NCBI RefSeq assembly: GCF_964204865.1
Contig: NC_135259.1
Coordinates: forward strand, 16,244,001 to 16,308,000
Direction: 5' to 3'
Length of the DNA: 64,000 nt
Origin: Styela clava
Taxonomy: Eukaryota
The notes beneath the pieces were generated by a model. That model saw nothing but the letters and a program-made list of their open reading frames with translations, was not told the DNA's origin and ran no database searches. How positions within the stretch are numbered: the first letter of the stretch is position 1; each line of letters begins with the position of its first letter. The position numbers and the translations under genes were made by a program. Positions 10,707 to 52,000 of the stretch are shown piece after piece.

Positions 10707-11186
10707 CTTTACGAGACAGTCTGGGCGTCGATATCTGTTCCAGAAGGAAGTGCAATCTAAAGACATCACCATTGGATTCTTTAATCAGAACATAATATTG
10801 ATTTACTAAAAAAATTAGATTTCGATAGTTTTTAGCCAAAAATCGCAATTTTGGTCATGTGATGGACTGATGGCGGAGACATATCACGCTTGATTTAAAC
10901 CATCATTGAGACTAGTATGATGCTCTCTGATGCATATGCCATTTCAGGCGATCATAGCTATACTTTTGCAAGCTCTATGACAGGATTGCGACGTCGTAGT
11001 GACCTAATTTTTTGCATGGCGTAGTCAGGTGGGGGTTAGGATTGGCATGTGCAAAAATTGTTATGCTATGCCCACTGGAAGTACTTGAGGTACGAAACTA
11101 CTCGAGACCTGAATATTCTATAAAGTAAATTTAATATTTTTTTTATACACAGCTGAGACAAGTATTGTGTAACTATTGTGCTAAAA

Positions 11187-11897
11187 ATGGGTAAAATTCG
11201 AAGAAATAGAACGAAATTCCACTTGTCTACAAAAAATTCACAAATTGAAGAAAGCACAAATCAAGAAATCGGAGTACCCAAAGACTTGGATACTATCCAG
11301 CTTCCTCCTTTGTCACTAAATCCTTTCAGTGGTGGTCAGATTTCAACTAGTTCCTTTGATCAAAAGGAACATGAGGAAAAGAAAATTGATTTCACTTCAG
11401 ATGTAGCTTCTGTAAATGTTCAGGAAAAATCTGCTGCATCTAACATTCATCTGAATAAGAAAAAAAGAAGAAAATTAAAACGTCAAAAGTTTTTGGAAAA
11501 ATTAGAAGTGACGAGAGTCACAAAAGAAAGCAAAAAAGCAGCAAAGAAAAGATCAGATGTTCCTGTTGTTGGTGACTTGAAGCCAATGTCTCTCGCTTTG
11601 AGTGATATAACTAAAATTATCAGCTCTGTTGACGATAGTCAAACTGATGCAAAAATTGTTTCAACTAAGAAAAAAAGAAAACGAAAACCAAAATGGCTGA
11701 AAGAGAAATTGAAAGACACAGATCCATTAGAAGGATTTAAGACAATTAATGAAAAGGGAATAACGAAAATACAAAGTAAAAGAACTCAAAAACACATGGT
11801 TTATGAAATTCAAAGACTGCAAAAAGTTGTATCGGATAAAAAATTTAATGGTGTCAATTTGATTTTGACAGATGCGAACACAAAAAACGTGGTGTAA
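11187..11897 (+). CDS. SLX9: Ribosome biogenesis factor SLX9 homolog (FAM207A), single exon as read
   Basis: ATG at 11187 gives MGKIRRNRTKFH. The block KKKRRKLKRQKFLEKLE...VPVVGDLKPMSLAL and the C-terminal EIQRLQKVV match the SLX9/FAM207A pattern (VVVGDLHPLRDAL). The extreme C-terminus is uncertain. Confidence 0.8.
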   Translation: MGKIRRNRTKFHLSTKNSQIEESTNQEIGVPKDLDTIQLPPLSLNPFSGGQISTSSFDQKEHEEKKIDFTSDVASVNVQEKSAASNIHLNKKKRRKLKRQKFLEKLEVTRVTKESKKAAKKRSDVPVVGDLKPMSLALSDITKIISSVDDSQTDAKIVSTKKKRKRKPKWLKEKLKDTDPLEGFKTINEKGITKIQSKRTQKHMVYEIQRLQKVVSDKKFNGVNLILTDANTKNVV

Positions 11898-12639: not shown

Positions 12640-13332
12640 ATGAATATGCTGATGAGCCTTCGAAATGCTGGAGGGAAGCTTGTGGGTGGACTTCAATCAA
12701 GATTATTAGTAAGTTCTATTACATGTGTGCGGAGCAAGCACACCTTACCTGATCTGCCTTATGATTACAAATCTTTGGAACCGACAATATCTGAAGAAAT
12801 AATGCGATTACATCATTGCAAACACCATGCTACCTATGTAACCAATCTAAACGCAGCAGAGGAGAAACTTGCTGAAGCTCAAGTAAAGAGCGATGCAACG
12901 GCAATAATCAATCTCGCTCCTGCTCTCAAATTCAATGGTGGCGGCCATATCAATCACTCCATCTTTTGGACAAATTTATCTCCGGATGGTGGCGGAGTTC
13001 CTCAGGGAGAGTTAGCTGAAGCTATTAATCGTGATTTTGGCTCCTTTGATAAAATGAAAGAAAAGCTTACTGCATCTACTGTCGCTGTTCAGGGTTCTGG
13101 CTGGGGTTGGCTCGGATACAATAGAGAGTGTGGAAGATTAGAAATAACGACTTGTGCTAACCAAGATCCATTGCTTGCAACTACTGGATTGATACCACTT
13201 CTCGGAATCGATGTCTGGGAACATGCTTATTATCTTCAATACAAAAATGTTCGTCCTGACTATGTTAAAGCTATATTTGATATTATTAACTGGTCAAATG
13301 TTTCAGACAGATTTGAAACAGCGTCAAAATAA
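12640..13332 (+). CDS. SOD2: Mitochondrial manganese superoxide dismutase, intronless
   Basis: Arg-rich targeting peptide, then [47 protein letters not shown] and the DVWEHAYY signature. Confidence 0.97.
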
Positions 13333-46448: not shown

Positions 46449-47151
46449 GGTGATCGTACATTTGAACCCACGTACATTTGAACCCATGCGTATATCAACG
46501 GGTTTAAGCTATATGCGGGTGCTAAAACCCATGGGTTAGGGTTAGTATGGGTTTAGGGTTAGTATGGGTTCGCCATATGGATAAGCCGTCTTATCGGCTT
46601 TCCTCTCCCCCGGGATAAATCAATCAATCAATCAATTTTATTCGGTCACTCTGATACAAACAAAACACAAAACAACAACAAAGGGACAAACAAAATACAG
46701 AGGACCTGGAGGACGGGCATAACTTAATAAAAAAGTTAAATACGTACAAGTACGTGCCCGTCCCCCAAAAACAGAATAAAACAAAAACACGATGTAACAT
46801 CGGGCAACAACTTATAAATTCAAATTAAAATGTGAGACGTGTATGTGCTTTTCCTATACAGATATATGGATTAAAACACTCGCTGACGAAAAATGGTGAT
46901 GTTGTGGGCCTACTTCAATTATATTGCAAAAATAACACAGTGACAAATTTTTTTTTACTAAAAAACAAGCTTGGTAAATGGATTGGATGTTCCATAGCAG
47001 TCTATGCACAAATCATGGATTGGGGTGTTGGTAAATCCTATCCAATCCTATCCTAACTATCCGTGAAACAAAAAAAGTTCCATAGGTGCAATAGCATACA
47101 GGTGCAATTGTCATGGGTTCAAATGTACGTGGGTTCAAATGTAATGGAACC
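46449..47151. mobile_element. TIR element with 9-bp TSD, carrying nested SINE and retroposon-tail fragments
   Basis: GGTGATCGTACATTTGAACCCACGTACATTTGAACCCATG / CATGGGTTCAAATGTACGTGGGTTCAAATGTAATGGAACC with a perfect TSD ATGCAGCAA (46440-46448, 47152-47160). Confidence 0.85.
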
Positions 47152-47712
47152 ATGCAGCAACTGTCAAAAGAACTCTGCAATAGTAATGACTTGAACTATA
47201 TGTGGTAATTTGTATTCCACATTTTGGTATTCTCAACTTACCGGTACCGGTATCTGTTTACTGGCAACTGTACCGATACCGTAATTGATATGCTGAGTCA
47301 TTCCGACTTGCTATTATTTGCGTAATGTTTTGTTGGTGCTTTATGATTTCATTGTGTAGGCCTACTGGTACCGGTACCTTACCTGAACAATCAGATACTG
47401 AGATATGAGGGTGTACTGAAACTGAGATACATATTGATTTAAAAAAAATATTTAACCAATTATTGTGTTTGCTACTGATTTATTTAAAAAATAATTCACA
47501 AAAGATGAGATAAGGTTTGGCCTACATAAATTGAATTACAGTCTTATTTTTAACCAAGCTAGGATGCATGCATTTTTATGCACTACAACTTTAATATATT
47601 TTTATCATGCTCAATTATCCACACTCTATTTTTTTAGTATCTCAATAAATAAGCTCACATAAATATAATTAGTCATTTTATAAGAGTGCGTCGTAGCATT
47701 CATACCTGCATA

Positions 47713-48375
47713 ATGACAGCTCCAAGTGTCGAAATAAGTGTTGTTTCGGACATTATGTGACCCTGGTGCTGGGTCGGTAAGAAGAAACTAGAACGTGCCA
47801 TGGATATGACCAAAGATAATTACAACTTCAAGGTTACTTGGCAACCCTTTTTTCTTCGACCCAATATGCCCCTGGAGGGTGTTCCCAAGCCATCAGATTA
47901 TGGCCCAAACACACCCGGATCCCAAAGGTTGATAAATATTGGAAGACAGGTTGGCATTGATTTCAGTTACAAATCAGATCGGTTTCCCAACACTTTGCTG
48001 AGTCATTGTGCTTTAGAATATGCTCTCGAACAGGATCCTTCAGGAAAAATTCAAAATGAATTGCAAGAAAAGTTATTCAAGGCCTACTTTACCGATGGAA
48101 ATTATCTCAATTCTGATCTGGTATCTTCACTTGCTGGGGAATGTGGATTGTCTGTGAGCGATGTTAAATCGTTTATTGCAGACACTAAAAACCAAGAAAA
48201 GACACGACAGAAGGCATTGAAAAACTCAGCAGAAGGTGTTACAGGAGTCCCATTCTTTGTTATAAATGGTCAAGGAATGATTTCTGGAGCACAAGAACCT
48301 GAAACACTTGCCAGAGCTTTTGAAATAGCGAATAACAAATTTCCTATTCAACGAACTTCAGCATCTTCTTCCTGA
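47713..48375 (+). CDS. DsbA/FrnE-family thioredoxin-fold oxidoreductase, predicted selenoprotein (UxxC), 220 aa, intronless
   Basis: ATG 47713 gives MTAPSVEISVVSDIM-[TGA 47758-47760]-PWCWVGKKKLERAM, in frame with ORF 47800-48375. FrnE-type motifs SD..CPWC..GK..L, W.PF.L.P, LF.AYF.DG, GVTGVPFFVIN, ISGAQ. SECIS hairpins lie downstream. Confidence 0.9.
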
Positions 48376-48647
48376 AACCCAAACTCTGCTTGCTGCCAAC
48401 TGCCAAAATGATAGTTTTATTCGAGTTATAGAAACTAGTTACATGTTAAAAGTAAAAAAATGGTATATTTTGTTCTCAGGAATTTGTATTTTACAGTAAT
48501 ACATTCAGTCAAATATTTGCTATGAATATAACCATTATAAATACATACAGTTTGTAACTATTACGGTAATTTCAGAAATATATTTTGCATCACACAACAT
48601 TGTTTTTACACCGTGACTAGAGTTTCTGCATGTTTATATTTATCGTA

Positions 48648-48724
48648 GTTGTTTAAAGCCTTATGACATCTGATGACGATTTTCTCTAAAGTCATCAAAT
48701 TGACTACATTTGTTTTATATCAAC
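48648..48724 (+). promoter_or_regulatory. SECIS-like element 1 (non-canonical apical loop)
   Basis: Helix I GTTG..TAAAGC / GTTTTA..CAAC. Core ATGAC (48663) / TGAC (48701). Helix II ATCTGATGAC / GTCATCAAAT (9 of 10 pairs). Loop GATTTTCTCTAAA. Confidence 0.6.
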
Positions 48725-48836
48725 AGTAAATGATACATGTAGGAAGATTTTTATAAATTTTTTTGGTTAGTTCATTTATGCAAAGCAATAATTTTTTAAG
48801 ATATCAAACAAATATCATTTGTATGTTTATGGAGGG

Positions 48837-48911
48837 TTGTTGAAAACTTTATGATGTTTTGATGAGAAAATTTTCAAACTCATCAAGATTGATTTAGCCG
48901 TTTTCTTACAA
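48837..48911 (+). promoter_or_regulatory. SECIS element 2 (canonical form-1 type)
   Basis: Helix I TTGT.GAAAAC / GTTTTC..ACAA. Core ATGAT (48851) / TGAT (48890). 11-bp helix II GTTTTGATGAG / CTCATCAAGAT. Apical loop starts with unpaired AAAA (48867-48870). Confidence 0.85.
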
Positions 48912-49079
48912 TTCAAAATACTTCATGAAAATGATATTTGAAATCATATATATTCAAAAGTTGTTTCTAATTTAGATATTATAGTAATATGTAGTATGGC
49001 TTTACATATCGAGAACTTTTCTACAAATGGTGTAACATAGTCGATTGTATTGCGCAATCTTTTCCACAACTGTTTCACA

Positions 49080-52000
49080 ATGTCTATGCAAAAATTGAGC
49101 GCAACTAAAAGAAAACAAAAACTTGCCGAAATATATCAAGCATTGAATAGTGATCCTGTTGACATACCAGCTCTCCGAAAACATGCTATTTCACCAGGTG
49201 GATTAATTCAAGATGAGGTAGGTATAAATAATTTTTTCAATTGTTTTATATGTTGTTGTTGCTCATTTCGAACAGTTTTGATATTTTGAGGCTTTTAGGT
49301 ATTTTTCAGTATTACTAATATTGAAGCAATATCTCTAGTCCTGAGTTTTTTACCTGTTTAGGAATGACACAATTGAATTATATTCTGGAAAATATTTTGA
49401 ATGCTATCTTCACATTTTAACGAGTCCATACTTATACTAACATCTTCAATAAGGCAAACAAAGAATATTAATTTCAAAATTTAATCTTATTAACATGCTT
49501 TCCCTACTAGGTTGATTTTAACATTTTCTATTCAAATGCTTCTCTAGGAGATGCTATTTGCAACATTGTATCTCTGTGTTTTTTTTTCATTAGGTTCGGA
49601 GAAAAGCTTGGCCTAAACTTCTGAATGTCAATGTATTTGATGCCGTTATAAAGCCAGGTACTTTATCTTGGGTCTCATGTAGTTTTGTACCTAACGTACT
49701 TCTAGTGGGCGTAGCCTAACAATTTTTTCATGTGTCAATCCTAACCCCCACCTGACTACGCTATCCAAAAATTGCGTCACCACGACGTCACAGTGACGTA
49801 ATAGAGTCCTCCAAACTATACAAACTGTCATACAAAACGCGCAGACGAGAACCCTAAAACGAACAGCTATTTCTCTCGTTTTCTCGTCGCAACGATCCCG
49901 ATAGGAGAAAGATCTCTGACGTTAGTCCGTTCTTTATCGTCGGCGCCAATGCCAGTTCAGGCAATCGTACATGTATTTGGCAAGCTCTATGACGTGATTG
50001 TGACATCGTATTGACATAATTTTTGGATGGCGTAGTCAGGTGGGGGTTAAGATTGACATGCCAAAAAATTGCTATGCTACTCCCACTAGTACGTCAGGTA
50101 CGAAACTCATAAGATCCCTTTATCTTATTTTTGTATTGTAATAATGTATGAGTTTATATACCAAAACAAGAATGCCTTACACTGTACCAAAGTGGAGTTT
50201 CCAGATAATTATCGTAGATTATATAGTAATAAAACTGTGATGTCTATGCTAAAACTAACCAAGGTAGCTTTGAGATCATCTTCATAATTTTAGATTGTTC
50301 AACTCCCCATAGAGTATACCAGTGGTTCACAACCGTTCATAGTCCGTGGCGCCCTCCCGGGATCTTACAGATTAGATCAACATGCTACAACAATGTGAAA
50401 ACAAAACACATCCTGTGAAATACCCTCATCGAGTAATGAAACTAGGAAAAACGTTGCTTTTTTGTAAAGGGAAAAGTAAAATCAGTTTTGCATCTAACGT
50501 GGTGACCCCCCTCCAACTGCTCTGTGGCACACTTGGTGGGCCACGGCCCCCGATTGGGAACCGCTGTAGTAGACCCTAGTTAGTTCACTTGAATTCATTA
50601 GACTTTAGGCAAAGATATCTTTTATTGTGTAGAATCTTGGCACAGTTAGCAGATCAGTTTCAGAACTTTCAACCTGATTTCTTTACTTTCATATGCCATT
50701 AATTTTCTTCTAATTTCAAAGGGGATCTACATTTGCATAAAGATTACCAGCAAGTTTTGTTGGATGTCAATCGGTCAGCTAGAAGATTTCCAAAATGTGA
50801 GTTTACCTCTTCAAACTTTAACCATGTTGCCATTACATGGAAAATTTTTCAGTGTCATTAATTTTAATCATTACGTTGTTCATTGAGTATATTGTCTGCA
50901 TAGATTGTTATGTTCAAGTGCCCTATTTCACAGCATTGAGCCAAAGAAAACAAATAAAATGCCTTGTACGCGCGACGCTAGTTTGTCCCATCGGGCTAAG
51001 CCTCGGGAACCTGCATGTCATCTCAATTCATAAGTTTGAATCCTGTGGGGAAACTGCTAGTTGGACGAGATGCGGCCTTTTGCCATATGATTTTTCACTT
51101 TGGAGATAAATATGAAAAGTTCAAATAATTCAGGGATGGCTAAAACTGAATAATTTAGTATTTTGAATACATTTTAAAATAAATATTTTGTATTTGAAAT
51201 ATCAAATGTGTTCTGAAATGCGTCTGTTCCACAAGATAATTCCTCAAGACAATTGTAAATTTGTAGAAATGAAATTTGTTGAGGATAATTGAGATAAACA
51301 TTGTTTTAATTAGTATACTCTTTTCATTTTTTCAGAAGTTACTAATTTTTTGTTTATCATAAGATGATGAATGCTTGAAAAGACATTTCTTGAGGTTTAG
51401 AGTTATGCTAATCTATGCCAGAATCAGAATGAGAGTTGAAATATTAATACTGTACGAACAAAATTTAGAATGCAATTCTTTTTCAGCAATGCCTGCCGAT
51501 CAGAGAGAAATTTTACAAAACCAAATGTTGGATGTTATTGTGTGGGTTTTGACAGAACATTCTGAATTACATTACTATCAGGTAAGTAATTGTATTTTAT
51601 TTGCCACAAGAAAGTTGCAAGCCTCATTTTTTGGTCTGGTGTTAAATATAAGTTAGACAAGTTTTTCTACAATTCTTTAAAAAACGACAGAATTTTTTTT
51701 ATTTCCTAATGCAACAGGAAATTTGCGACACTTGCTGCTTGTGTTTATATGGAGCAAATGTGTACATCACATAAAAAATTGCTCTGATCGCCTTTTTACT
51801 GTGTAGTAGACCTTTGCTGAATATAATGTTATTGTACTTTGGGGACTCCCGAAGTATGCGAACCAAGATGGCGGACATCGGAATGTTATATGTGTACTAG
51901 GTTAGGGTTAGGCCATAATTTTAGGTATAAATACTACGGGAGGCTCTTGGCTAGTCTTCGAACTGATAATAGGACTAAAATAAGGAAAATTGGAACAAAA

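Follow-up and report, generated by a model that had tools for sequence, protein, structure and literature searches.

Selenocysteine (Sec)-containing DsbA proteins were described in 2010 for the ascidians Ciona intestinalis (chromosome 3q) and C. savignyi and for the amphioxus Branchiostoma floridae (Jiang, Liu, and Ni, BMC Genomics 11:289; PMC2874816). In the Ciona and amphioxus proteins, Sec takes the place of the first Cys in CxxC, and the Sec-bearing part of exon 1 had been misannotated as untranslated region; the SECIS elements of both Ciona DsbA genes were described as form II, with an extra mini-helix (PMC2874816). Sec-DsbA was subsequently reported for Nematostella, Lottia, Capitella, and amphioxus, together with Cys forms in a sponge and Trichoplax and the loss of Sec-DsbA in vertebrates (Jiang et al., 2012; PMC3473315). 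SelenoDB 2.0 holds an entry named "FrnE (DsbA)" (PMC3965025), and DSBA is counted in algae as one of the most widespread Sec proteins (PMC7539508). A full-text literature search for Styela in combination with selenoprotein returned nothing relevant. The family, the position of its Sec residue, and its occurrence in ascidians have been in print since 2010, as the initial annotation of the locus reported here had suspected when it named a Ciona precedent and allowed that the family might not be new; the Styela clava gene is a missed annotation, not a discovery.

Judged from its sequence and that of its relatives, the locus at positions 47713 to 48375 (+ strand) of the window, that is, of the whole 64-kb stretch of Styela clava DNA that was analyzed, is very probably a genuine Sec-DsbA/FrnE gene. 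The coding stretch comprises 663 nt and 220 residues in a single + strand frame that is interrupted only by a TGA at 47758-47760. The start ATG (47713-47715) opens a run of 15 sense codons (MTAPSVEISVVSDIM; 47713-47757, +) that corresponds to the first beta-strand of the thioredoxin fold and ends in ...VVSDIM. The in-frame TGA, predicted to encode Sec as residue 16 of a UPWC motif, follows on the same strand in the context ...VVSDIM-TGA-PWCWVGKKKLE, and the remaining 204 codons with the stop TGA at 48373-48375 (47761-48375, +) encode the DSBA domain, including the predicted resolving Cys19 and the GVP cis-Pro loop. Sec or Cys is found only at positions 16, 19, 99, and 144 of the 220-residue product, whose C terminus reads ...RTSASSS. 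The closest upstream in-frame stop ends at 47652, and no other in-frame ATG lies between that stop and 47713. Because the coding sequence is collinear with its homologues, we regard it as a single coding exon, and an intronless coding sequence of this kind would be expected to escape exon-junction-dependent mRNA decay at the early UGA. The internal stop forms the tetranucleotide UGAC, in which the base after UGA is C because the next codon is that for Pro; termination is weak in a UGAC context. The 377-Mb genome has a single copy of the DsbA-like gene.

The entry for this gene in the list of open reading frames (ORFs) is a 191-aa frame at 47800-48375, which begins at the first Met past the TGA and has no active site. 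That this tracked ORF lacks the catalytic motif while the frame as a whole is otherwise intact over 220 aa had been noted from the sequence at the outset, and both observations hold: the frame is open from 47761 to the stop at 48373-48375. The exact 191-aa product has no identical entry in a collection of 15 billion proteins, from which the full product is missing too, and the gene therefore looks unannotated in that form.

The assignment to the DsbA/FrnE family, likewise proposed initially, was confirmed by profile and structure searches. The 204 residues past the TGA match Pfam PF01323 (DSBA-like thioredoxin domain) with an E value of 5.8e-29 and a score of 101.7 bits against a cutoff of 25.6. 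The match spans profile positions 11 to 190 of 191; positions 1 to 10, which lie outside the searched piece, would map to the TGA and the stretch preceding it. Among solved structures, the nearest is Deinococcus radiodurans FrnE (5CNW/5CP1; E value of 1.1e-21, 187 residues aligned). The P-W-C of the Styela protein aligns to residues 23 to 25 (P23-W24-C25) of FrnE chain 5CNW, which places the TGA opposite the preceding residue, the initial Cys of CxxC. Alignment with homologues leads to the same placement, as the initial annotation had claimed in setting the sole internal stop exactly on the first Cys of CPWC: a C-P-[WFYH]-C motif occurs within the first 60 residues in 102 of the 120 best database matches, with Cys in the TGA column. 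The GVP loop (G162-V163-P164) forms the cis-Pro loop in thioredoxin folds and does not vary among the close-clade sequences of alignment A1.

The Styela protein resembles D. radiodurans FrnE in the aligned PWC, in the retained GVP cis-Pro loop, and in that neither has an evident signal peptide, but FrnE has a Cys where the Styela protein has the predicted Sec. FrnE reportedly also carries a C-terminal CxxxxC tail. Such a tail is absent from the Styela protein, in which no Cys follows residue 144, and we therefore describe the protein as an FrnE-like domain and not as a full FrnE equivalent. Periplasmic DsbA of E. coli, the source of the family name, has a thioredoxin fold whose N-terminal nucleophile belongs to a CxxC-type motif. 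The structure search returned no E. coli DsbA chain at E values up to 0.001, and the sequence similarity of the Styela protein runs to the FrnE subgroup. Outside the active site, Cys99 (the His-Cys of ...SHCALEY...) follows an invariant His and is retained almost without exception in the Sec clade (position C83 in alignment A1), while most bacterial Cys-form homologues have another residue at this position; a redox or structural role specific to this clade is possible for Cys99.

A scan of JGI metagenome and metatranscriptome contigs, many of them of about 1 kb, identified 27 related loci, of which 24 span the N terminus. TGA stands at codon 16 in 21 of these 24 loci, with conserved coding sequence on both sides of it (vSDim upstream and PWCWVGKRxLE downstream). 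The other three have Cys codons: TGC in a close relative (L017) and TGT or TGC in two distant bacterial-like loci. This is the picture that had been anticipated for homologues, with TGA or Cys at codon 16 and conserved flanks. The ...vSDim motif also precedes the Cys in bacterial homologues. The 21 TGA-bearing loci probably include marine bacteria and algae with DsbA-family selenoproteins. L017:336 (contig Ga0099809_10713464) is the sole Cys-codon member of an otherwise TGA-bearing, eukaryote-like clade and likely represents a Sec-to-Cys conversion.

If the TGA were instead a genuine stop, the locus would be a decaying pseudogene or would yield nothing but the 191-residue protein that begins with Met at 47800. 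Gene callers produce exactly such truncated ORFs in Styela and its relatives: like the entry in the ORF list, seven of the closest database relatives (P0001, P0002, and P0004 to P0008; 65 to 82% identity) have their start at the first Met past the TGA or beyond it, which also bears out the expectation that automated annotation would truncate the gene. In 21 loci, however, the 15 codons upstream of the TGA show coding conservation, and in alignments they match the first beta-strand of the Cys homologues; the frame is otherwise intact across 220 codons, and the gene is followed by a specific SECIS. The truncated product, moreover, would be missing the first beta-strand and the redox motif as well as the beginning of helix 1. 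We therefore consider termination at this codon very improbable and favor its decoding as Sec.

Two further close relatives, P0003 and P0009, read through the codon with a "W" at the TGA position inside the conserved SDIM-W-PWCW; the "W" is likely a TGA that was translated with a genetic code in which TGA means Trp. The Styela protein pairs with P0003 in a maximum-likelihood tree (support of 100/99), and P0009 nests among four TGA-bearing loci. The clade that holds the Styela protein (support of 94/93) has 19 rows, 16 with TGA, 2 with "W", and 1 with Cys, and the Cys-form bacterial sequences lie outside it. A reading of the Styela TGA as Trp was considered and rejected: the locus is nuclear, and Trp at the nucleophile position leaves the motif without an attacking residue.

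The same comparisons bear on the quality of the DNA sequence, since the reading of TGA at 47758-47760 is based on one assembly together with comparative evidence. An assembly or sequencing error might have turned the TGT or TGC of an ordinary Cys form into TGA, and a Cys form does exist in one close relative, L017. Yet TGA is the rule in the clade, the closest relatives are likewise truncated or carry "W" at this codon, and nothing would be expected to preserve a high-scoring SECIS 476 nt past the stop of a gene in the Cys form. Such an error is, in our judgment, likewise very improbable, and the predicted Sec codon is the reading that we retain.

A well-formed SECIS about 470 nt past the stop had been part of the initial annotation, and our searches recovered it. 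A form-1 SECIS, here called H2, was identified by descriptor, fold, and covariance model at 48839-48905 (+). Its ATGA lies 476 nt past the stop and 1093 nt past the UGA, and it is preceded by a predicted 3' untranslated stretch (48376-48838, +) with 27% G+C that contains a diverged SECIS-like duplicate. All parts of H2 are on the + strand: helix I is GAAAAC/GTTTTC (48842-48847/48900-48905), the 5' core is ATGA (48851-48854), helix II has 11 bp without mismatches when G-U pairs are allowed (48856-48866/48879-48889), the apical loop has 12 nt and opens with AAAA (48867-48878), and the 3' core is TGAT (48890-48893). The 11-bp helix II was recovered in the minimum-free-energy fold. Our gapless SECIS descriptor called for [AG]TGA-N, a helix II of 9 to 13 nt with at most one mismatch, a loop opening with AA or CC, N-GA-N, and a 5-bp helix I; H2 was its sole match on both strands of the window. 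By chance, 40 dinucleotide-preserving shuffles of the window gave an average of 0.875 matches per 128 kb, and about 0.005 descriptor matches are expected in the 706 nt from the stop to the next gene.

An Rfam scan of 47000-50500 at E values up to 10 found no SECIS, and the SECIS_1 model does not report H2. In a genome-wide search (377 Mb), SECIS_1 gave weak matches of 23.5 to 31.9 bits and thus peaked at 31.9 bits, against a cutoff of 35; since this model reaches its cutoff nowhere in the genome, its silence on H2 says little. The Rfam null was accordingly rejected as evidence against a SECIS. The weak SECIS_1 matches sit 3' of ORFs resembling glutathione peroxidase (GPx) and selenoprotein W (SelW) genes. 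Five of the six weak matches lie just 3' of ORF pieces, namely those of GPx (L034, L035, L037, and L038) and of a SelW-like protein (L036), as identified by eye, and the sixth (L033) has no recognizable ORF nearby. The six loci are distributed over contigs C14, C18, C8, and C2, and two of the GPx loci are tandem paralogues on C18. All six elements share the geometry of H2, with ATGA-N, an 11-nt helix II, a loop of 11 to 14 nt opening with AAA, and TGA-N.

We built a covariance model (R1) from three of these elements (SelW-like L036 and GPx L034 and L038), none of which comes from the window; the model was limited to three in-register elements because MAFFT, given ten elements, did not align them in structural register. 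Applied to both strands of the window, R1 gave one significant match, at 48839-48905, with 31.6 bits and an E value of 3.8e-5; the next-best match scored 13.6 bits (E value of 1.4). R1 is a narrow model and for this reason missed the DsbA SECIS elements in the distant metagenome loci. A fold-based finder located elements in metagenome loci L007, L010, L011, L015, L016, L023, L024, and L027, although it is too insensitive for these to be read as a tally. Rfam-based annotation would miss every SECIS in the Styela genome, whereas a small model made from the genome's own elements works.

The Styela gene is like the Ciona and amphioxus cases in its family, in the predicted Sec at the first Cys of CxxC, in the SECIS in the 3' untranslated region (UTR), and in that the Sec-bearing start was missed. 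The Ciona elements, on the other hand, are form II, whereas that of Styela is form 1 with a 12-nt open loop, a comparison made with the published description of the Ciona elements. The DsbA selenoproteins of marine bacteria and algae (PMC1088965, PMC7539508) have the UxxC form of the same domain, as in Styela, but the bacterial genes carry their SECIS inside the coding region, in contrast to the eukaryotic 3' UTR type of Styela.

Styela, a stolidobranch, also differs from the Ciona cases in having a diverged duplicate of the hairpin 188 nt upstream of the SECIS. This duplicate, H1 (48651-48717, +), forms a direct repeat of about 188 nt with H2 (family D3, alignment A2), and the tandem paralogous segments extend over 48630-48740 (H1) and 48818-48928 (H2). 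H1 has an ATGA at 48663-48666 and a TGAC at 48701-48704, a helix I of TAAAGC/GTTTTA (48654-48659/48712-48717), and a helix II that is one pair shorter than that of H2 and contains one C/A mismatch (48668-48677/48691-48700), all on the + strand. Its loop opens with GA, not AA, and its score with R1 is 3.1 bits. At two positions the pairs differ from those of H2 on both sides: C-G in H1 versus G-C in H2 at the apex of helix II, and T-A versus G-C at the outermost pair of helix I.

It is conceivable that H1 and H2 both function, as two tandem SECIS elements for one UGA. The two hairpins are tandem paralogues, both helices of H1 still pair despite the two positions changed on both sides, and a SelW1 with two SECIS elements has been reported for Ciona (PMC2874816). 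H1, however, scores far below H2 with R1 (3.1 versus 31.6 bits), has a shorter and mismatched helix II, and opens its loop with GA where H2 and the six comparison SECIS elements of the genome have AA. It passes the descriptor only when the AA rule is dropped, and five other sites in the window then pass by chance; furthermore, two sequences cannot separate selection from recent duplication. We consider it unlikely that both elements are functional, and to the same degree doubtful that the 188-nt duplication produced a second working or regulatory SECIS; if it did, this would be a rare single-UGA gene with two SECIS elements of different strength, which could tune Sec insertion versus termination. 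On our reading, H2 would be the working element, and H1 a duplicate that is in decay or, at most, weakly active.

The genome encodes one strong tRNA-Sec (79.6 bits against a cutoff of 47), which ARAGORN calls as tRNA-SeC with the anticodon TCA, and SECIS-bearing GPx and SelW-like genes are present as well. Separately, dozens of tRNA-like sequences in tandem arrays at C3:23.49-23.76 Mb and C9:21.07-21.20 Mb (L003 to L005) give subthreshold tRNA-Sec matches of about 41 to 45 bits; these arrays are probably ordinary tRNAs with a long variable arm (Ser or Leu type) and not Sec genes. A bacterial origin of the locus, or contamination, was rejected: the gene lies 16 Mb into its contig (the window is at 16.24 Mb on contig 13) and is single-copy, the window contains a Styela-identical SOD2, and the SECIS is of the eukaryotic 3' type.

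We propose that the form-1 element H2 (48839-48905) in the 3' UTR would direct the recoding of the UGA at 47758 to Sec, with the tRNA-Sec of the genome and the standard eukaryotic machinery for Sec. In thioredoxin-fold enzymes with CxxC or UxxC motifs, the N-terminal position of the motif is the solvent-exposed nucleophile, and Sec at this position is a fully ionized, more reactive attacking group. By analogy with the CxxC enzymes, the U16 selenolate would attack substrate disulfides or oxidized thiols, and the mixed selenenylsulfide would then be resolved by C19. Sec insertion at U16 is thus a prediction, as are the direction of the redox chemistry and the substrates; the Styela protein may be a reductase, an isomerase, or a peroxidase-like enzyme.

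The N terminus enters the first strand 15 residues before the active site and has no hydrophobic run like that of a signal peptide, with a maximum 12-residue Kyte-Doolittle mean of 1.39, in agreement with the earlier remark that none was obvious. Since its C terminus likewise lacks any motif for retention or targeting, the protein is predicted most likely to be cytosolic. In this respect it differs from E. coli DsbA, which is periplasmic, in that the Styela protein does not have a signal peptide-like N terminus. To our knowledge, no DsbB-type partner is to be expected for the Styela protein in the cytosol.

Over the 706 nt that separate the stop of the selenoprotein gene from the next same-strand ATG (49080), no canonical poly(A) hexamer (AATAAA or ATTAAA) occurs. 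This next gene resembles TBC1D20, although Pfam searches with short exon pieces of it gave no match and did not confirm this identity. The gene layout is compatible with an ascidian operon. Elsewhere in the window, an intronless ORF for a 230-aa mitochondrial Mn-superoxide dismutase at about 12640-13332 (+) is 100% identical to a Styela clava UniRef entry. Just upstream of this SOD2 and on the same strand lies a 239-aa single-exon ORF (11178-11897, +) that matches Pfam SLX9 (ribosome biogenesis; E value of 1.6e-10).

With this locus, the gene set of Styela clava would gain a selenoprotein gene; the locus is also a further instance of ORF-based callers truncating the family at the UGA. The Sec form of the putatively cytosolic FrnE/DsbA protein, which has been lost in vertebrates, would thereby persist in stolidobranch ascidians as well as in Ciona.
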